A stretch of DNA of 64,000 bases from Oculina patagonica (GCF_052425735.1 NC_135769.1:18910001-18974000), one strand, 5' to 3'; shown: positions 14,012-63,900, counted from the stretch's first letter. Program-made: numbers and translations. The notes: generated by a model from the letters alone, not told the origin.

Positions 14012-17000
14012 ATGGCGGCCATAAATGATGTGACTGAGCTGCCCGTGGAAAATGACATCGGCGAAACATGGAAAATGTAAGGGAGTATTCTGGCTCTAAA
14101 ATTTTAATTTAACAAAAAATAATAATAAAAGTTTTATAGTGTAGGCAAATCGAATAGTACCGGGTCTTGATCTTGTTTCGGTACTGAGACGATCTCCAGT
14201 AAAAATTACTGCTTCAAACACCGCCTGACAACAAACCATCAAACCAATGACATTCTAAAGCCCACACTATGAAGCAGAGGTTAAAGAAAATTGTCACATG
14301 GGGACATTTTCTTGCCTGAGCTAAAAGATGTGACTCTTTGGGCAAAAAATCAGTTTCTCAATCTGCCAACAGGAGAAGCATCTGAGATTTAAGATAAAAA
14401 GAAAAACTTTCCACACTGATGACATTCTCTTCAAAGCTGAGATCTTATTCGTGTCTTGATTTGGTCAATAGACTGTGAACGGGTTCGCATTTGGGGTCTC
14501 AAGCACAAGTACAAAGCTGTANNNNNNNNNNNNNNNNNNNNNNNNNNNNNNNNNNNNNNNNNNNNNNNNNNNNNNNNNNNNNNNNNNNNNNNNNNNNNNN
14601 NNNNNNNNNNNNNNNNNNNNNNNNNNNNNNNNNNNNNNNNNNNNNNNNNNNNNNNNNNNNNNNNNNNNNNNNNNNNNNNNNNNNNNNNNNNNNNNNNNNN
14701 NNNAACTGGATTGTTGTTATGATTGGTCTAGTGAGCATAACAGCCAATCACAGATGCTATATGTGCCCTAATAGTACACATCCTTAACATCTCTTTTGGG
14801 TGTTCAGAAATGTGGCACCTACAGAGTTTTTTCCCTTTACTCACTGACAGGTTCATATACACTGTCTTGACGTACAACAAAATATTCAAAACTAACAATA
14901 TTATAAGGAGAATGGATGATTTTAGCTTCGATGAAAGGGTGGAGAAATGATCTGCAGGAAACTTAATTTGTACATACAATTTTTAGGGAACAAATGAGTA
15001 AGAAGAAATTGTGAGCGAGGACTGTGTTGGGGAGAGAGGAGGACCCTCAGTAAGATTGATGGTGGAGTGACATCTCCCAAAGGAGATGAGATCATGATGT
15101 GTTGCTTGGTAGTGTGACTTCCCAGAATTGAGGTAGGGTACAGGGGCGGATAGGATTCAAAAGGGGGGGGGGGGGTGGATGGCGACCAAGGGCCAAAGTG
15201 AATTTGATGAAAAATGAGGGGTGGATATCCACCCTATCCACCCCCTGTATCCGCCCCGGGGTTTCTCAGTGATTTACTTGCATCTGTACACTGTATACCC
15301 TGACCTTGTGTGGGAGAATGGCTATGTTTAGTGATAATGGACCGAGGGGCGGGGGGCTAGTGAGGGGAGAAGAAGGTTTTGGAGTGAATCAGGGTGTGAA
15401 ACTTTTGGGGGTGAGTAGGATTTTGGGGGGAAAACCAGTAATTGTGAATACAAATTTTTTATCTTTTCCCCTGTAGGGTAGGAGGTTTTGGGGACATTAT
15501 AGATTTGGGGGTTTGTAGCCCTAGGGATTTTGGAGGGTTGATATTTTTTTCCCCATGTGCTACCACCCCCCCCCCCCCCCAGGCGGTCAGGGGATATATG
15601 TTGATTTGGTGAGGAACCAGCACCACCAGTCAGAACTGGCAGAGAGGTTGTATGAAGGGGGAGAAAGAACTACCCTAGTGAGATGAAAGGAGAGATAAAG
15701 AACAAAAAAAAAATTAGATGTGGGAAGTGCATAGGGAACACTCCATAAAATATAAGTGACAACACTTCAACAGATTGTGATGTGCAAGGAACTGAGTATA
15801 TGTTGAGCACAAACACAAGACTCCAAAAAACGAATGAGATGCTTGTGTCACAGACTATTAAATTAACATTTTTGTCAATAATTTAAGATTAATTAATTCA
15901 TTATTATTATTGATCTTTCTAAAGAAATTTAGCACCAAATTCGTTTTATTAATAATTTATTATTTCAATGTTGTTTAAGGTCATTCTTGTTGATGGAAAT
16001 GGAATGTTGCACCCAAGAGGTAGCTTTTTCTTGTCTTTTTTATGTTTATAATTCTAATATTTATCGTAATTTAATCAGACTGACTAGGAATTTAGAGAAA
16101 GGAATTGTATCACTGTGCTATTTATTCAGTAAATTTCTTTAAAAAATAACTTGAATAATTTTTTGCAGGTTTTGGTATTGCTTGTCACCTTGGAGTTCTG
16201 ACTGATATTCCTACGGTGGGTGTGGCTAAGACCCTGTTTCATGTGGATGGAATAGAGCGAGACTCCAAACATGCTGATCAGGTAAACATGCTGATCAGGT
16301 ATTTAGGTACCTAAATTCTATTCGCTAAAATAAACGCCCAGCTAAACGAAAAAGGGTATCTTAAAACTGAATTTTCTGTTCAGGTATTAGTATTAAAGCG
16401 ATTTTATAAAGATTTGTCTTGCCGGGCGCGGTTAGCCGTTATTTGGTTCATCACGGAACGCTTCTCCTCCCCTTGAATAGGGTGTCATTTTTCGGTTTTG
16501 GGCTTTAAAAGGGTATCAATTTTTACGCTTTCTTTATCCTTAAATAGGGTCAGAGTTTAAGAACCTTGGCGGCACACCCCTATCCGAAATTTATGGGAGT
16601 ACCCCCCCCCCCCCCTGGCTAATCAGACTATTGCAAGTAACTTATAATAATTTATAATTGGACACAAAAAAACTCAACCAATCCAACCAACTGAAACTAG
16701 CTGATTCCAGTTGCACACAGAATTATGATTTAACCGTCACTTCCAAAATTGACCAAAACCAGTTGTGGTTAAGACTGCAGTTGGGTCTAACAGAACTCAA
16801 CCTTTTAAAGTCTTACTATTTTTAAAAAGAATAAAAACATTTTGTGATGATGATATTGGTTCCTCTCTTAACAGATCAAAAACCTTTTGAAAACCAGCGG
16901 AGACTGTTTTCCACTGTTGGGCTCTTCTGGCACAACCTGGGGCAAGGTAGGTATGAATCATTTTAAATTAACAAACATTCTGGATCAGATAATGCATTAG

Positions 17001-37942: not shown

Positions 37943-38442
37943 NNNNNNNNNNNNNNNNNNNNNNNNNNNNNNNNNNNNNNNNNNNNNNNNNNNNNNNNNN
38001 NNNNNNNNNNNNNNNNNNNNNNNNNNNNNNNNNNNNNNNNNNNNNNNNNNNNNNNNNNNNNNNNNNNNNNNNNNNNNNNNNNNNNNNNNNNNNNNNNNNN
38101 NNNNNNNNNNNNNNNNNNNNNNNNNNNNNNNNNNNNNNNNNNNNNNNNNNNNNNNNNNNNNNNNNNNNNNNNNNNNNNNNNNNNNNNNNNNNNNNNNNNN
38201 NNNNNNNNNNNNNNNNNNNNNNNNNNNNNNNNNNNNNNNNNNNNNNNNNNNNNNNNNNNNNNNNNNNNNNNNNNNNNNNNNNNNNNNNNNNNNNNNNNNN
38301 NNNNNNNNNNNNNNNNNNNNNNNNNNNNNNNNNNNNNNNNNNNNNNNNNNNNNNNNNNNNNNNNNNNNNNNNNNNNNNNNNNNNNNNNNNNNNNNNNNNN
38401 NNNNNNNNNNNNNNNNNNNNNNNNNNNNNNNNNNNNNNNNNN
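37943..38442. other. Scaffolding gap (exactly 500 N)
   Basis: Run of n separating the two duplicated blocks. Confidence 1.
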
Positions 38443-55560: not shown

Positions 55561-56432
55561 CAATGTTGTTATAGTAAGCGTTTGAGAAAGCCACCGCGTA
55601 AAGTAAGAAGTATGTATTGTTTGATCACACCTTTTCATTATTTTATTCCATCCCATATCTTCATTCATCACTTTTACCATACGCACTATCTCATCCTTTG
55701 TTTACAAAGATGTTGAAAATAAGACCCATTAGCTTTAATCACATCGATCTCATTTGCACCGTTTCCTACAATAGACCTCCTGTGTTGTGCTTCCGCGTGC
55801 AACAAAGGAATTAGGAGACGTCTGCGCGCAGGCTTTGCTGTGTGGTACATGTTCATGCAGACAAACTGATCCCCACAGAAAACTTTTTCTTCGCGCAGTT
55901 AAAACTGGTTTTCACTAGCGACGCAAGCACGAGAAAACGACAAGGATCAAATTGCAATGCGCTTGTGCTAATGCTTGTGTCGAAACCGTTTCCACGGTGC
56001 CTGTGCTTGCATCGCTAGTGAAAACCAGGGTTTATATTCTCTGTACGTGGATCGCTACTGCGTAAAATACAAAGAGTAATTATAAAGCGCGAAAATCCAT
56101 TCCTTAAATGCGATGTCATTTATGGACCGTCAACGGAGTACGTTTTGTGTGTTTTTCTTAGAAGCAGGTCTTTTAAGGTCTATACATAAGAACAGGTATA
56201 TTTTAACCTGATTCTTGGTTGAGATCGTAAGGTTGCTTAATGAGTGTACAGTGGGACCTCGATTTTACGAACCTCTATATAACGAAGTTCTTGATATAAC
56301 GAACGATATTCTTCGCCCCAGTTATAGTAAAACATATGGAAAATAACCTCGATATAACGACACCTAAAGCTGAATCTGAAGTTTTCCTAAAAACGTGAAT
56401 AAACACTTTTAAACTATAAAGCTGAGTATGTT

Positions 56433-59400
56433 TTATCCTAGCACATTTTCTGCAAGCTCTATTTTTTCTTGAAGTTCTTGTGAATTTGTTAAAATTCTTT
56501 CAATTTCCTCCACACTCATTTCCAAGAGCATCCCTGTGATTTTATCAGCATTCTCAGGATGCGATTCCTCGACCTTTTCGTACAGTTTCCCTCCTAATTC
56601 GTCTTTGGTGATGTCTTCTTTCTTGTGCTGTTCAGCTAGTTCCCTGTGAAACGAAAAAGGAAATAATTTTTTTCTTCAATCAAAACCAGTAGTGGATCTA
56701 AAAAGCAGGAAAATCCTGGGCTTCTTCTTGTCCAAAAGGTTTTTTTAATGGGCTTATTTGAGGTGGTCTTTATTCAGGGAGCACGTTATTGGAAGGATTT
56801 TGTGCTTTAAAGATGGTAAAACTTATATCTGGTAAAGATTTTGCATCTTAAATATATAAGGATGGTTACACTCTCTTAACACAACTGTACAATATTTTAC
56901 CCTAAATGTGACACAGCGTCAAGTGTGAAAGAAGCCCTACAGTAGGGGTGGGGGTGCTGGTGGGAGGGGGATTTATTAGAAAAAATGATATGATGCTTTT
57001 TGATAGGATTACATTCAAATGGGGATGGGGAGGGGCAGTAGGTACTTATCCTGACAGTAAATGCCCATCCAGGCATCCTTTTTTATTTGGAATACAACCT
57101 ACACAGCATAACTTTTTGACACTGGGAACAAAAAATTATAGCTGTTTTGCATTATGAAAGTTATTCTACGGCCATTTTCATTGTAAACAATAACTTAGAT
57201 TTAGTCAGGGGAACAAGTACCAGTTCATGACAAATTCTGATCTGAGAGACTGGACTGCACCTGCAGTTTTTGTTGTCAAAGTTGCTAAGCAACTGGTCAT
57301 GCAATGACTGGTATGACACCTTTCAGAGTACTCTGAAGTACTCACGTTATTATACTAGCACTTGTTCCCACGACTGGATTAGCAGCTGTTTACCTGTGTG
57401 GGACAGTTTGTTCAGTTCTATGTAACGTGGCTAATGCTCCTTCAAGTTTCTCCTTCAACAGTTGCTCATTGATAACCAAATTTTCAAGCACTGTGCAGTC
57501 AATATCCATCAACATTCCCGTTAATTTTCCAGCCTCACCTGGATACCACTTATCTATAATACTATAAAGCTGCTCTGCTAGAGTGTGTTTCATTTGATAG
57601 TCTGATAACATTGTACTTCCAGACTCCTGAACAGAATTACTAGTTGAAGCTAAACTATGGGGAATTCCTTTGTCAATATTTGTGTTACTAAGGACATTGG
57701 CTGCGTGCGAAGCTTTCTCTTTCAATGCTGCAGAATCCTTTACCAACAGGTTCAGAGTAATTACATCAAGTTCTAGTAGCATCCCTGTGATTTTATCTGC
57801 TTGATCAGGATACCACTCACTAATCATATCATATAGCTGTTCCCCAAGAAGTGTTTTCTCTTTCTGCTCAACAGTGGAAGATTCAGTTTCTGGTTTAACG
57901 TTGAGTGCTGTCAAGGCCTGATTTACTTTTTCTTCAAGAGCAGCCTGATTTTTAACAAGTTGTTCTAAATCTTGAAGGTCCATTTCAAGAAGCATTCCTG
58001 TTATCTTGTCAGCTTGATCAGAATCAATTGCACAAACCAGTTCATAGAGCTCTTCTCCGATAGATGTTTTATCGCAAGCTTGTTTTGATACAGTTGATTC
58101 ACTGTACCCATTTTGCATCTGTCCAGAATTATTTTGCAACACTGACAATACTGCTTCAACTTTTTTTTCTAACAAGTCTGCGTCTTCGATCAGGTGTTCC
58201 AAACTTTGATTGTCCATTTCTAACAAGATTCCTGTCAATTTTTCTGCATCATTTGGATGTCGATTTTCAATTAAGGAGTATATCTTTTCACCTAAAGCTT
58301 GCTTTGTTTCAAGGTTACCATGGTCCATGGTGGAATTTCCAGATGGGGAAAAATTGCTACTCTCAAATTGTTTACTCTTGTCATATTTGGTTGAAGGCAA
58401 TTCTTGTAACTGCAGACTTCCATTGCTGTGTTGTCCAGTGTCATTACTTTTGGCCTGTTCTACCCTGCAGATACAGTAAAAGTAGTAGTGTACAAAATAA
58501 TTATTATCAAAAAATAATGATATCTTTAATCTTGGGTGTTACTTGTTGGTTTTTGCAGAAACCACTGTTGATTGTGGCCTGGGGAAAGGGGGGAGGGGGT
58601 ACTCTCTATGATGGCCTATACAGGGAGGCTCCACCCCAAAGGGGTACCTTTTTCATGCTTCAGTTATGTGAAAGGGTAGGGATTTCACAAGTTTTATAGG
58701 TATATTTAGGGTAGGGATATTGGTCATTTAGGTATTGAAAAACACTACATAAAAAAGGCATCAAGACTTTCTGTTTAAGGCATATGTCATGTCATTTTGG
58801 TACATGAAAGGGGTACCTTTTCTCAGTAAAAGGTATATGGAAGGGGTGCCATTTCTGTAGAAAAGGTATATAAAAGGGTAAGGGGTTGGACCTCGGGGCA
58901 GAGCCTTCTCATACAAAACTATTTTGAGTAGCCCCCCCCCCCACCTCCCCTGGCGATTATAGCTATTGTGTTGGAGTGAGTTTTTTTTATTATCCCCAGA
59001 ATCTTATCATTTATCATGGTGTCATTGACAATACCTTTTATAGCAACAGCAGTGAAACAAATTTGCCTTTTATTATTTTCTACAGTAGAAGATCAGAAAA
59101 ATCATGTTTGGTTTAAAATAGTTTTTCCAAAAACATATCTTTTCCAACAATTGAACAAATTTCAACAAAATTATTTAAACAAACGTTTTTGTCATATAAC
59201 ACCTGCAAGTCATTTCATTCTTAGGCCATCCCAATAAAATGTTTCGTTTCCCATCGCCCCGTCTTTTGTGATGGGTCGGTCGGTCGGGCAAAAAAAAAGA
59301 AAAAAGAAAAAACACTTGGGTTCCAGAGAAGGCCGGGCTGCTAAGTAAGAAAGCCTGATTACAAAGTCAACTCGAAAACGTGGTCTTTTCGTTCGTTATT

Positions 59401-59544
59401 CCTTATCAAATGTCTAAACAGTCTTTAAATAACGTAGTATCGATGTTTATTAAAGACAAAGACATCATATACCAATCGTTGTTAATAAAACAAGATCGTG
59501 TGCTTGTAAATTGAAGTACTTGCTTCTTTAACTAGCAAATCTGG

Positions 59545-59584
<40 letters not shown>

Positions 59585-60618
59585 CGAAAAAAATGGGTCG
59601 GTCGGGCGATGGGAAACGAAACATTTTATTGGGATGGCCTTATCTCTTGCCAAAAATATTTTTCAGTAATGTTATCTTTAATCACTGTAATAAGAAAGCC
59701 TAATGTAATAAGCTTTATGGTTACTCTTGAGGCTCCCTTTCCACCTCCTATAACTATTTTCATGCTTTATGAAGTAAATAAAATAAAATAGAAAAGTGAA
59801 TAATATTATCCTTATGTTTTTTTTTGGTTTATGATTGAAAGTTGCTAAACTATGATCAATACAATATTTCATCAAGGGGCAATAAATTTACTTTATTATC
59901 ATTTATTTAAAATAAAATTTATGACAGACAAAAGGGCACCATATCTTTAAATCCTCTCCATAAAATGGGATTCTTTTTATGTTTCAAGGGATAATAAGAA
60001 ATATTGAAAACAAAAGAGAATGTATTTATTTTAATATTCCTATTCAATGATGGAAGAAAAAAATATTGGTTATTGTATGTAATCTTGAATCTTCAAGAAG
60101 TCAAACAAAATTTTTATTTAATGCTGTTATTTGGTCCAATATAAACCATAAAAAGAGAAATAGCAAGAAAATAATAACAATAATCACAGTTCATTCAAGG
60201 ACAGGTAATAATTTATGGGAAATAAAGCTTAAATTTTAATACCAGGTGACACAAACAAAACCGAACAAGGATTTTACCAGCAGCTGAGGGGAAATCAGTC
60301 ACGCGATCACGAAAATCTTTTAAAATCAATTGACGTTTACGTTGAAAGTGGAAAACGAGATTCCTTTTACGAAGCAGTAATATCTCACCTTTCAGGGACA
60401 TCCGAAGAAGACATGTTTTCCGCAGCTTGGTGAATTCTAGCATGGAGTTCTTCTTGATTTGTTGTGATTAGAAGTCGTTCTAATTCCAGATGCTCTAACT
60501 CTAGTAACATACCGGTAATATTTGCACACATTTCTGGATAGATTTGCTGTACTATTTCGTATATTTTTTCTCCAAATTCGGCTTCATTCTTGTCGCGTTC
60601 GCTCTGTGAATTTCCCAT
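56433..60618 (-). CDS. Stand-alone tandem MLLE (PABC) domain protein with six MLLE repeats and an N-terminal myristoylation-like motif, 503 aa; complement(join(56433..56643,57394..58464,60389..60618))
   Basis: Both introns phase 2 and GT-AG, total 1512 nt ending in TAA; six repeats of LGE.LY..I....P..A.KITGMLLE-like sequence; starts MGNSQS; no RRM or HECT domain. Confidence 0.85.
59224..59639. mobile_element. PIF/Harbinger-type MITE in intron 1 of the MLLE gene
   Basis: tta|ggccatcccaataaaatgtttcgtttcccatcgccc ... gggcgatgggaaacgaaacattttattgggatggcc|tta; 3-bp TTA TSD. Confidence 0.85.
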
Positions 60619-60931
60619 CTTCTTGTGCACTGAAACAAATTTACAAAGCAGTACTCTTCTAGGGTGGGGTGAGTACCGTCCTCGCTGATATTTATCTTTT
60701 AGTAATCTTTAATTGTATTCTTTCGCAGAAAAGTATATTTCGATATGTTTTTTTGGGAAATTATTTTAAAAAAATTCTTTTTCTGTATAAAAACCTCGTA
60801 TTTTTCATAATTTTTTTATCGTATATTTATGCAAATTATTTTCTCCCTCCCCTACTCAGTTGTTATTTTTGCTTGAACCTAGGTCTCTTCTGCGCCTTGG
60901 ACAAATCGACGATTGATCTTGGGTTTCAAAT

Positions 60932-63900
60932 ATGGCGCGGGAAGAATCCGAGGTAGTTACACATTTTTTCCAGCTCTTTTTCTCTTACCTTGACGACAAT
61001 TCGACGTTATTAACACATTTTCAAACAACAAGTCACTTTGACTCAAACTTAACAATCATTTGTAATTTCAGGAGCGATATTTGGAAGAGATGCCAGCTTG
61101 TTTGCGTGAGCTGTTTGAGCAAACAAGCTCTGAGCAACTAAAATGCTTTGCAAACAACGCTCATTCTTCGACGAAATCTTTCAAATCGATATTGTCATTC
61201 AACGGCATGGAATTTCCACCACCTCTGGTAAGATCTATGTTACTTCAAATGTAATACATCGTGTTGACGTTCAGTAAAAGTAAGCTTAAAAACTTAGCTT
61301 AATTCTGTTGACATTATGAGTTTTTCGCGTCATCACCAATTTGGGCATGTAAATAAAGGTGTCCTTGGTGAATTTCTAAGGCTTTTGTGCTTTTTTGCAT
61401 TGATTATTGATGTCAACTCACGCCAGGAGTCATGTTGGCTGAAGAAGTTTAGTTTATCGTTTTCAGCTCTTGGCTTTCGCTTTAGCGATGTACCTTTTTT
61501 CAAGTGGTGAATCACACTTTTTACAAAGTATACTGTATACACAAGCATTATTCTTTGTTTTTAAATTTAAAGTAAGCCTTTATAATCTATTGCAAAGCTG
61601 TTGACACCTTGTTTTTGACAATCGTGATCATGTTGGTACATGACATGCACAAGCACGGTTTGTACTGCAAACAATATATTTTCTGCATTTTACTGCAATT
61701 TTGCTAGCTGTGAAATCATTTCTGAGTCAATAGTAAGATTGATGTACTTTTCTTCACTTGTTAATTAGGGTTATTGTCCATTATATAATTGGTCCCATGG
61801 GACAATCAGAACATTACCTCCTGTACATTATTTTGTTGTACTGTTGCCGTGAAAAAGATTGCCACAGCTTCAACCTATTAAATTATTATTCCAAAGAGTT
61901 ATCAACTCTATCTAGCCTACATAGCAGCGTCTGAGTAGTGTTGCACCCATATTTGGTACATGCGAAAAGCGAAAATTGGCCATGCGAGGGAAAAGTAAAG
62001 TGTCACTTTTCCCCTCACGTGGCAGTCTCGTGCCTTTCGCATTTCCCAAACGCGCGCTCAAAAACTACAGGCTTTATCAACTCTAAGTTCTCTTATGTTA
62101 TCAATACACTATTAGCAGACAAATGACAATAACAGAGAAATTGAGAAATTTAACATATTTGGAAATCTTTGGGTCAGACAGTGGGGATGGACTTTAAGAT
62201 CAAAGTACAGATATCAGATTGAGTTCGAGCACGACTTTTCAAAGTTAGTGTTGATAGTCTCCTATTAGACTGGTCGGCAACAGAGAGGACGGACGGCTTT
62301 GGCTACCTAACTGCCTTGAAATCTGAAAGTCATTCTCGTACTCTGTAAAATATATAGTTGATGAATGATATGTTGATCACAGTTACTGTTTTAAAATTTA
62401 TTGTGCCTTCCTATGTAGCTCACCGAGGATGAAAGGGCAGAGATGCGTCAGTACAGAAGAGAGGCAGTCAAATGTGAAGCCAAAATGTTTGAAAGGAGAC
62501 GAGAGAGGTACTCAGACCTACTCTTACAAGTCATGTTAGTGATGGATAGAGTTCAGGTGAGGAGACTACTAATAAAAATGTAAAATCAACAGGCCTGCAG
62601 TACAGTCTTACACCTGAAATGTTCATTTCTACTTCATGAAGTATGAAAGATCTACACCTGTATGTATGGGAAACAAGTTTATTGCAAGAATACTACCAGA
62701 TAATGCACAGTGTGCTCTCATATTTTCATCTTTTGGGACTAATTTCTTTAACAGGTTAAAAGGTTAGAACCACATAACTAACCTGTGTGCACGCCAGACG
62801 TCTCCCATTTTCTAGTTTGCTTCACTTGAAAAAGCAAAGGAAATAGGAGAACGTAGACCTGCACACAAGCTACCACATAACTTGACTTAGAATTTCAGTC
62901 TACATGCAGTGCTCGACACCAACTTTTTTGGATACAAGGCAATTGGCTAGTAGGTACAAATAATCACTAGCCCACAAGGACAAGTCACTAGCCCCACCCG
63001 CCCCCCCCCCCCTTTTAAAAAAAATAAAAACAGCCAAGTTTGAATCAGCTAATCTCTTAGCACTATATTTGTTTGAGTCCACACAAGTACATCTTTCCTT
63101 CACTGAGACGCAGCAACGATGCTATCATCCAACTCGGTTGAGAATTTCTTGACCGTGGATCACACTTCTTTTTCTCTTCATGCTGTGTGTGGTCCTCTGG
63201 TGAACAATGTAAATCTGGCTCACGATTATCAGCCCTTAAAGGCGGTTTTCTTGTAGGTAAAGTGTTACAAAAGCTTGAAATCATGCTCGCGTGGTCGCTC
63301 GCGCGAAAATCCCAAGATGGCCGACTTATTATGGCTCTCTCCCAGGTCCCTTTTGGGTGTCATGGAAGCGAGGACAGAGGGTCTTTTCCAAGATGGCGTC
63401 AGGTTTGCGAGTTGATCGTACGATATAAATCCGTATGCGATGTGGTTTAAATTACTCAAGCTATGGAAACTACATCCTGATGAAGGTTTCTGGGATAAAA
63501 ACTTCCCAAGTTATAGAGTTGTAGTTGATTTATTTTTCCACGAATCTTACTAGTCTATGGGCTAGTAGGAGAGTACTTTTACTAGCCAAGCATGAAATTT
63601 TACTAGTCCTGGGCTAGTGTACTAGCGTTAGTGTCGAGCACTGACATGCTACAGTTATTGGTTGCTTACACAATAACAGATATTTGTGAGGTACTATTGG
63701 GGAGGTGGGGAGGGGAGGAGAGGGAGCATGCATGACTGACCAGCTAAAGTTGAACTATATATCAATTGTCCCTGCAAAATATGATGCAAAGTGTAGTCAG
63801 AAAAAGTGTTGTTACTATGTGAAATTATTTGTATTTAATTTTATGTGTAAAGATTTTTATCGCACCTGTCCACTTGACAGTCTTAAAATATTTGCTTTTA

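Follow-up and report, generated by a model that had tools for sequence, protein, structure and literature searches.

We analyzed a 64,000-nucleotide (nt) stretch of Oculina patagonica DNA (GCF_052425735.1 NC_135769.1:18910001-18974000), referred to below as the window, with positions counted from its first letter. On the minus strand, positions 56433 to 60618 hold a real, expressed three-exon stony-coral gene. Its product of 503 amino acids (aa) carries six MLLE (PABC) domains and starts with MGNSQS, a sequence that fits the N-myristoylation consensus. The gene is built as follows.

60389..60618, minus strand: coding exon 1, aa 1-76 and two bases of codon 77, with the MGNSQSERDK N-terminus and the first MLLE domain (sequence, Pfam, RNA contigs).
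58465..60388, minus strand: intron 1, GT..AG, repeat-derived sequence including an element resembling a miniature inverted-repeat transposable element (MITE); joint in RNA runs X1, X25 and X3.
57394..58464, minus strand: coding exon 2, aa 77-434 in part, with four MLLE domains and poorly conserved linkers (Pfam, AlphaFold).
56644..57393, minus strand: intron 2, GT..AG; joint in RNA runs X25 and X3.
56433..56643, minus strand: coding exon 3, aa 434-503, with MLLE repeat 6 and the stop codon TAA at 56435-56433.

The start codon is the ATG at 60618-60616 (context AAGAAGATGG), the spliced coding sequence measures 1512 nt, and the two introns are both in phase 2. The donor of exon 1, at 60389, is AG/GTGAGA (the slash marks the border), and exon 2 is flanked by the acceptor ctgcag/ and the donor CAG/gtaaac. 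We placed the contigs of four public RNA runs on positions 56000-61999 and found that they span all three exons. The joints listed above (58464 to 60389 and 56643 to 57394) both read CT..AC on the plus strand, which corresponds to GT..AG for a gene on the minus strand. Given these joints and the exon coverage, the gene model is experimentally supported.

All exons were searched with Pfam, in which the MLLE profile is PF00658 with a gathering cutoff of 27 bits. Exon 1 yielded one MLLE domain (46 bits, E value 4e-12), exon 2 four stretches (217 bits, 2e-65), and exon 3 one domain (64 bits, 1.5e-17). No family besides MLLE exceeded its cutoff; RRM, HECT, UBR, transmembrane and lipid-binding domains were all absent from the matches. 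The six repeats are located as follows.

60400..60591, minus strand: MLLE repeat 1, aa 10-73, signature NITGMLLE.
58125..58310, minus strand: MLLE repeat 2, aa 129-190, signature KLTGILLE.
57891..58076, minus strand: MLLE repeat 3, aa 207-268, signature KITGMLLE.
57678..57863, minus strand: MLLE repeat 4, aa 278-339, signature KITGMLLE.
57411..57596, minus strand: MLLE repeat 5, aa 367-428, signature KLTGMLMD; the sole repeat with Gly579, and with Ala at 563 (human PABPC1 numbering).
56436..56612, minus strand: MLLE repeat 6, aa 445-503, signature KITGMLLE.

The C-terminus, LAENVLG, is kept in other corals. The protein is thus a member of the MLLE superfamily, and because RRMs and HECT/UBR domains are absent, it is neither a PABPC, nor a UBR5/HYD-type HECT ligase, nor an Rrm4-type transporter. 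A tblastn search with the 503-aa protein found no further MLLE-coding DNA in the 64-kb window. An earlier, sequence-only reading of this DNA had proposed three exons splicing into a 503-aa open reading frame (ORF) with six MLLE domains and no RRM or HECT. Every coordinate was correct, the introns were confirmed by the RNA contigs, the Pfam check returned six MLLE domains and nothing else, and the six signature octamers were identical to those we found.

The same reading had recognized that coding exons attached through an acceptor 11 nt before the ATG, supplying RRMs or burying Gly2, would overturn it. We examined the region upstream of the start codon, where the following feature was found.

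60619..60831, minus strand: 5' leader, represented by an X1 RNA contig, unspliced through the AG at 60631, with an in-frame TAA at 60711.

The AG in question exists, but the X1 contig (record 7; 445 nt, 60388-60831) runs across it unspliced at a depth of 22.9, close to that of the exons; a contig of the same run lying mostly within intron 1 has a depth of 6. The TAA at 60711 is the first in-frame upstream stop, 93 nt before the ATG, and no in-frame ATG lies between the two. In its Kozak context, the ATG has A at -3 and G at +4, and is followed by GGA. The equivalent of the AG at 60631 in one other coral locus (L005) is followed downstream by an in-frame TGA. A conserved divergent gene, described below, begins about 240 nt upstream (from approximately 60857); together with the in-frame stop and the leader contig, it leaves no room for upstream RRM exons. 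Upstream coding exons, whether RRM-supplying or burying Gly2, are therefore ruled out by the X1 read-through, the TAA at 60711 and the neighboring gene. One X6 contig stops at 60631 with three unplaced letters, so a small share of transcripts may carry a 5' exon that is spliced on and non-coding. Overall, there is good support for the MGNSQS start. The leader also contains an out-of-frame upstream ATG at 60808, which opens a 15-codon upstream ORF (60808-60761, minus strand; MKNTRFLYRKRIFLK).

We compared this N-terminus with those of relatives, using a PROSITE-type N-myristoylation pattern, G-{EDRKHPFYW}-x(2)-[STAGCN]-{P} after the initiator Met. The sequence GNSQSE of the window protein fits the pattern, and so does every cnidarian relative whose N-terminus is complete. 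In corals and sea anemones, about 25 relatives start with MG(N/S/T)xx(S/T/G): Gly2 is invariant and position 6 is Ser, Thr or Gly, with positions 4-5 freely variable. Five other coral genomic loci encode MGNSLS (two loci), MGNSVS, MGNAMS and MGNSAS, in most cases continuing with SER(D/E). Two cnidarian transcript contigs encode MGSSGS, with an in-frame stop 12 nt upstream, and MGTSVS, whose in-frame stop lies a few codons upstream; the RefSeq starts are MGNSGS in Nematostella (LOC5510140/A7SCP7), MGNSEG in Exaiptasia and MGNFVG in Actinia. When exon 1 was searched against 1.84 billion representative proteins, about a dozen more were found in which MG(N/S/I)xx(S/G) stands directly before an MLLE domain. 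The database protein P0045, which starts with MSVDREKK and was considered as a coral relative without Gly2, proved to be an artefact of an ORF caller that began at a GTG; its contig has ATG GGG, giving MGTSVS, and an upstream stop.

Constancy of Gly2 and position 6 next to variable positions 4-5 is the pattern expected if recognition by N-myristoyltransferase were under selection. The coral protein is probably N-myristoylated, likely co-translationally. As to the match of MGNSQS to the consensus (Gly2, Ser6) claimed at the outset, the pattern is satisfied and the start is backed by the leader contig and the upstream stop; a search for relatives keeping MG...S, which had been suggested as a check, showed that the Gly2 signal is conserved across stony corals and sea anemones, which speaks strongly, if indirectly, for N-myristoylation.

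The six repeats were aligned to the MLLE domain of human PABPC1, to which they are 41-47% identical, and the residues that contact PAM2 were taken from the eRF3-MLLE structure paper (PMC2854688). These are Gly563, Glu564, Phe567, Gly579, Lys580, Thr582, Met584, Leu585/586, Glu587, Lys606 and Ala610, and each of the six repeats retains the majority of them. Thr582, Gly583 and Leu585 are kept in all six repeats, and Met584 and Ala610 in five each. Phe567 of PABPC1 is replaced by Tyr in every repeat, so that this position is aromatic throughout, and position 606 is Lys or Arg in all six if a one-residue insertion is allowed in repeat 1. Over 43 coral-type relatives, identity to the window protein is 0.72 in the domains and 0.38 in the linkers. 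The PAM2-contact positions are more conserved than the other domain positions (0.83 versus 0.76; Mann-Whitney p=0.001). No short conserved linker motif, such as an auto-inhibitory PAM2, was found across the coral-type relatives, in which the linkers are poorly conserved.

An AlphaFold model was made of residues 78-433 (repeats 2-5) from a 36-row alignment. It consists of four helical bundles with a predicted local distance difference test score (pLDDT) of about 90, joined by linkers scoring below 50, and its predicted template modelling score (pTM) is 0.28. The low linker pLDDT and the low pTM indicate that the domains have no fixed geometry relative to one another, like beads on a string. We read the whole protein as six modules that fold independently on disordered linkers, with neither a catalytic nor an RNA-binding domain. 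The best Foldseek matches of single bundles in the PDB were the MLLE domains of PABPC1, UBR5 and Leishmania (root mean square deviation 0.7-1.3 A, target-normalized template modelling score 0.7-0.9), and in superpositions on PABPC1 MLLE-PAM2 complexes, 63-65 residues of a single bundle align at about 1.0 A. A feature search of the ESM Atlas returned generic MLLE clusters only.

We then considered how widely such proteins occur. Four other coral genome assemblies share the six MLLE domains and their 1+4+1 distribution over the exons, and a six-MLLE array is also present in the database protein P0052. Four-domain versions occur in two cnidarian transcript contigs and three sea-anemone proteins. 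Sharks, sturgeon, bichir, teleosts, lamprey, amphioxus, echinoderms and one hemichordate have proteins of three or four MLLE domains, with nothing else and no annotated function. Among molluscs, Octopus bimaculoides has three MLLE domains, Octopus vulgaris CAI9723533 has six in 593 aa and the gastropod Babylonia has six in 1573 aa. In a domain tree, the repeats are positionally orthologous within corals, and repeat 1 of the window protein groups with repeat 1 of sea anemones (Shimodaira-Hasegawa-like approximate likelihood ratio test, SH-aLRT, 93). The deep domain tree did not decide between a shared origin and separate origins of the cnidarian and bilaterian arrays, as its 62 columns are too few to settle the backbone. 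Because it has an MG(N) start directly before an MLLE domain, an MLLE-only remainder and positional orthology of repeat 1, we assign the coral protein by sequence to a cnidarian family typified by Nematostella A7SCP7.

A full-text literature search for tandem or multiple MLLE or PABC proteins in animals, or for the Nematostella, Exaiptasia and Actinia gene identifiers, found nothing. The statement that no such animal protein has been described is therefore true of the literature, but the databases hold uncharacterized MLLE-only arrays of three to six domains in several phyla. Four further database proteins (P0145, P0199, P0128, P0127) combine three or four MLLE domains with other families: a rhodopsin-type G-protein-coupled receptor (GPCR), PHAX, an F-box and beta-propeller, or MIF4G plus RRMs. 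These combinations may be fused gene models or genuine new architectures; the long GPCR and PHAX hits look fused.

Upstream of the MLLE gene, in head-to-head orientation, lies the neighbor mentioned above, with these features.

60857..61227, plus strand: start of the divergent neighbor, covered by X1/X6 contigs including one of 2848 nt; GT..AG joint in X1 and X6.
60932-60952, plus strand: neighbor coding exon 1, encoding MAREESE.
60953-61071, plus strand: neighbor intron, GT..AG.
61072-61227, plus strand: neighbor exon 2, encoding ERYLEEMPACLRELFEQ after MAREESE.

The ATGs of the two genes are 313 nt apart, with a compact divergent promoter region between them. The head-to-head layout recurs in five other coral loci (L002-L005, L007), where the neighbor lies about 450 nt from the MLLE start codon. 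A later exon block of the neighbor, DSLASTS.S.AFSGK, matches the divergent neighbor of the Nematostella orthologue, an 880-aa product with the Pfam family PF16025 (CaM_bind); this comparison included L010 6474-6548. This microsynteny, extending from corals to sea anemones, hints at co-regulation of the MLLE gene and its neighbor. The neighbor protein contains two strings that resemble PAM2 or PAM2-like motifs, SILSFNGMEFPPPL (window 61186-61227, plus strand) and VDEEATEFNRPF (in a later exon, L003 1153-1869, minus strand). As a built-in ligand they are a weak lead and probably due to chance: at the key Phe position other corals have Leu or Val, and SILSFNGMEFPPPL has Gly in place of the invariant Ala.

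Several other observations concern the surrounding DNA. Intron 1 contains the MITE-like element at 59223-59640, which is bounded by perfect terminal inverted repeats of 37 nt (59223-59259 and 59604-59640) and has A/T runs inside. RNA-contig depth reaches thousands over this element and neighboring repeats (58600-58999, 59200-59799, 56000-56399), so we take them to be high-copy transcribed repeats. An Rfam search over 56000-61500 gave zero matches. The window has two N runs, at 14522-14703 and 37943-38442, which are assembly gaps or masked stretches.

As to function, we lean towards the view that the protein is a multivalent docking platform for PAM2-type motifs, acting as an adaptor or a decoy, and probably N-myristoylated. 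A short linear motif of the PAM2 type would dock in each MLLE groove, so that one molecule could gather up to six motif-bearing proteins or hold partners with several motifs at high avidity. The outcome would be either a scaffold or a competitor of poly(A)-binding protein for shared partners, which in other organisms include termination, deadenylation and microRNA (miRNA)-effector factors. The myristoyl group would not be a stable anchor but would allow weak or regulated contact, either with a membrane or with a partner protein's hydrophobic pocket. Myristoylation, peptide binding and its specificity, the identity of the partners and any location at a membrane are what we infer for this protein.

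A number of observations weigh against this interpretation, beginning with the lipid. At one coral locus (L003, 4149-4175), the conserved AG is immediately preceded by an in-frame ATG, 27 nt before the MG codon; were this ATG part of the transcript and chosen for initiation, Gly2 of that species would be internal. At a sister locus (L007), the equivalent ATG meets a stop after three codons. Bilaterian relatives start with MD, ME or ML, or with MGD, which fails the pattern through Asp at position 3. Because these relatives lack Gly2 or have Asp at position 3, lipidation is predicted not to be intrinsic to the wider MLLE-only family. The residues following Gly2 are also poorly suited to stable membrane anchoring: the window protein has a net charge of -2 over residues 2-20, 13 relatives range from 0 to -6, and 13 of these 14 sequences, the window protein included, have no Cys near Gly2 (the exception is P0213, with Cys9).

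The remaining points concern the groove, in which Gly563 is Ala in repeat 5, Glu564 is Gly in repeat 6 and Lys580 is Asn in repeat 1, each being kept in the other five repeats. The systematic change affects Gly579, which reads Ala, Glu, Asp, Asp, Gly and Asp in repeats 1 to 6; of 199 coral-type repeats, 183 (92%) have an acidic residue here, Asp or Glu; in the bilaterian arrays this position is variable (Ala, Gly, Gln, Glu, Asn, Pro). In PABPC1, Gly579 contacts the motif through its backbone: its carbonyl hydrogen-bonds the amide of the key Phe of PAM2, and its own amide reaches Glu9 through water (PMC2854688). Because Gly579 is replaced, the coral repeats may have low affinity for canonical PAM2 peptides, and a variant motif may be what they really bind. 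We read the acidic residue at 579 as a family-specific retuning of the groove edge. The original proposal of a PAM2 scaffold or decoy is supported in so far as the contact residues are largely kept and more conserved than the rest of the domain, but canonical specificity cannot be assumed, with Gly579 being Asp or Glu in four of the six repeats and Ala in one.

Other interpretations were weighed against a weakly or reversibly attached docking platform. The protein might be a stably membrane-anchored PAM2 hub on an organelle or the plasma membrane, concentrating or sequestering deadenylation, termination and miRNA factors as an animal analogue of fungal endosomal attachment of messenger ribonucleoproteins (mRNPs). 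Myristate by itself binds membranes weakly, and stable membrane binding of myristoylated proteins normally needs a second signal. The invariance of the Gly2 signal across Hexacorallia and the six largely intact MLLE grooves would suit such a hub. Rrm4 and Upa1, in which an MLLE platform links mRNPs to endosomes, provide a precedent (PMC9249222); however, the attachment of Rrm4 is indirect, through a FYVE adaptor, and Rrm4 has RRMs. Residues 2-20 of the window protein contain neither a palmitoylatable Cys nor a polybasic cluster, and Pfam detected no transmembrane or lipid-binding domain. An acidic, Cys-free N-terminus means that the usual second membrane signal is missing, which argues against a stable anchor. 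We consider stable anchoring unlikely, and the "membrane-anchored" part of the sequence-only reading is somewhat disfavored.

At the other extreme, the protein could be a soluble decoy or "sponge" that, lacking RRMs, titrates PAM2 proteins off mRNA-bound PABP and so damps the coupling of deadenylation and termination, with Gly2 serving another use, such as stability. An MLLE-only protein with conserved groove residues would suit this, and the fish, shark, echinoderm and amphioxus relatives are without Gly2, so that the core function of the wider family would be independent of lipid. However, six domains on long flexible linkers exceed the needs of a simple competitor, Asp/Glu579 suggests a ligand set unlike that of PABPC, and the constancy of Gly2 and position 6 beside variable positions 4-5 fits N-myristoyltransferase recognition. 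On balance, this account seems to us improbable. A more radical possibility is that the coral-type MLLE domains have been re-purposed to bind an unrelated ligand, as has been proposed for two MLLE domains of Rrm4, with no PAM2 involved and no connection to mRNA metabolism. The acidic residue that replaces Gly579 in 92% of coral-type repeats would be in keeping with this, as would the finding that MLLE1 and MLLE2 of Rrm4 bind neither PAM2 nor PAM2L (PMC9249222). Those two domains, however, have lost the Phe-permitting Gly of Devan et al., which we read as the Gly563 equivalent, and are 17-32% identical to canonical MLLE, whereas the coral repeats keep this Gly in five of six cases, have an otherwise PABPC-like groove and share 41-47% identity with PABPC1. 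We give re-purposing very little credence.

The docking-platform reading can be carried further, although we consider the extension improbable. In hexacorals, a lipid-modified multivalent hub might use its acidic-579 grooves to read a variant PAM2 code, distinct from that of PABP, and thereby bring together or tie up translation and mRNA-decay factors, at a membrane or within a condensate. If true, the hub would be a layer of post-transcriptional control independent of RNA binding and the first equivalent in animals of the MLLE platform known from fungi, and it would be genetically testable in Nematostella.

It is through MLLE-PAM2 contacts that poly(A)-binding protein brings in the machinery of termination, deadenylation and miRNA action. 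As late as 2022, Rrm4 was still presented as the first multi-MLLE protein whose domains form a platform (PMC9249222). Our results show that animals have a whole unstudied family built from MLLE arrays alone. In its coral and sea-anemone branch, an N-myristoylation signal is deeply conserved as well, and the groove edge bears an acidic change specific to the family. If PAM2-type binding is true, MLLE-only proteins would be candidate regulators that compete with PABP or relocate its partners. Database entries named "PABC domain-containing protein" gain a defined architecture, and cnidarian relatives can be grouped with the coral gene.

Among known systems, the nearest precedent for an RRM-less MLLE protein is Arabidopsis MPC (MATERNALLY EXPRESSED PAB C-TERMINAL), a stand-alone plant PABC protein without RRMs that is thought to compete for PABP partners. 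MPC has a single domain, no lipidation signal and no array. The closest counterparts of the coral protein are the uncharacterized cnidarian arrays of Nematostella vectensis (LOC5510140 = XP_001630622.2/A7SCP7), Exaiptasia diaphana (LOC110253855), Actinia tenebrosa (LOC116295046) and Desmophyllum pertusum (OS493_023541), which are likewise MLLE-only with MGN.. directly before the first MLLE domain. The Nematostella gene also has a divergent neighbor equivalent to that in the window. The sea-anemone proteins have four MLLE domains in 331-346 aa, compared to six in 503 aa in the coral, and the Desmophyllum pertusum model is a truncated four-domain fragment. The bilaterian arrays, annotated as "PABC domain-containing" or "uncharacterized" (Callorhinchus milii V9KYV4, Polypterus LOC120535173, Larimichthys LOC104924493, Branchiostoma, Ptychodera, Acanthaster, Octopus vulgaris CAI9723533), resemble the coral protein in having three to six MLLE domains and no other Pfam family. 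Unlike it, they have MD/ME/ML.. N-termini without a usable Gly2. The octopus repeats lie nearer to PABPC1 in the domain tree and may represent an independent expansion.

The coral repeats match the MLLE domain of PABPC1 (PDB 3KUS, 3KTR, 8SMO) in fold, in the KITGMLLE signature and in most PAM2-contact residues. PABPC1, in contrast, has a single MLLE domain after four RRMs, with Gly579 and Phe567 where the coral repeats have mostly Asp/Glu579 and Tyr567. Rrm4 of Ustilago maydis carries three C-terminal MLLE domains that form a flexible platform, linked to endosomes via the FYVE protein Upa1 (PMC9249222). Rrm4 and the coral protein share several MLLE domains on flexible linkers and divergence in the groove. 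Rrm4 has three N-terminal RRMs and binds mRNA, whereas the coral protein is without RRMs; its MLLE domains have diverged strongly, with MLLE3 alone binding PAM2L, whereas the six coral repeats are near the PABPC type; and its membrane link passes through its partner Upa1, with no lipid on Rrm4 itself. By analogy, the coral protein would work most like the MLLE platform of Rrm4, yet it stands outside that family, as it has no RRMs.

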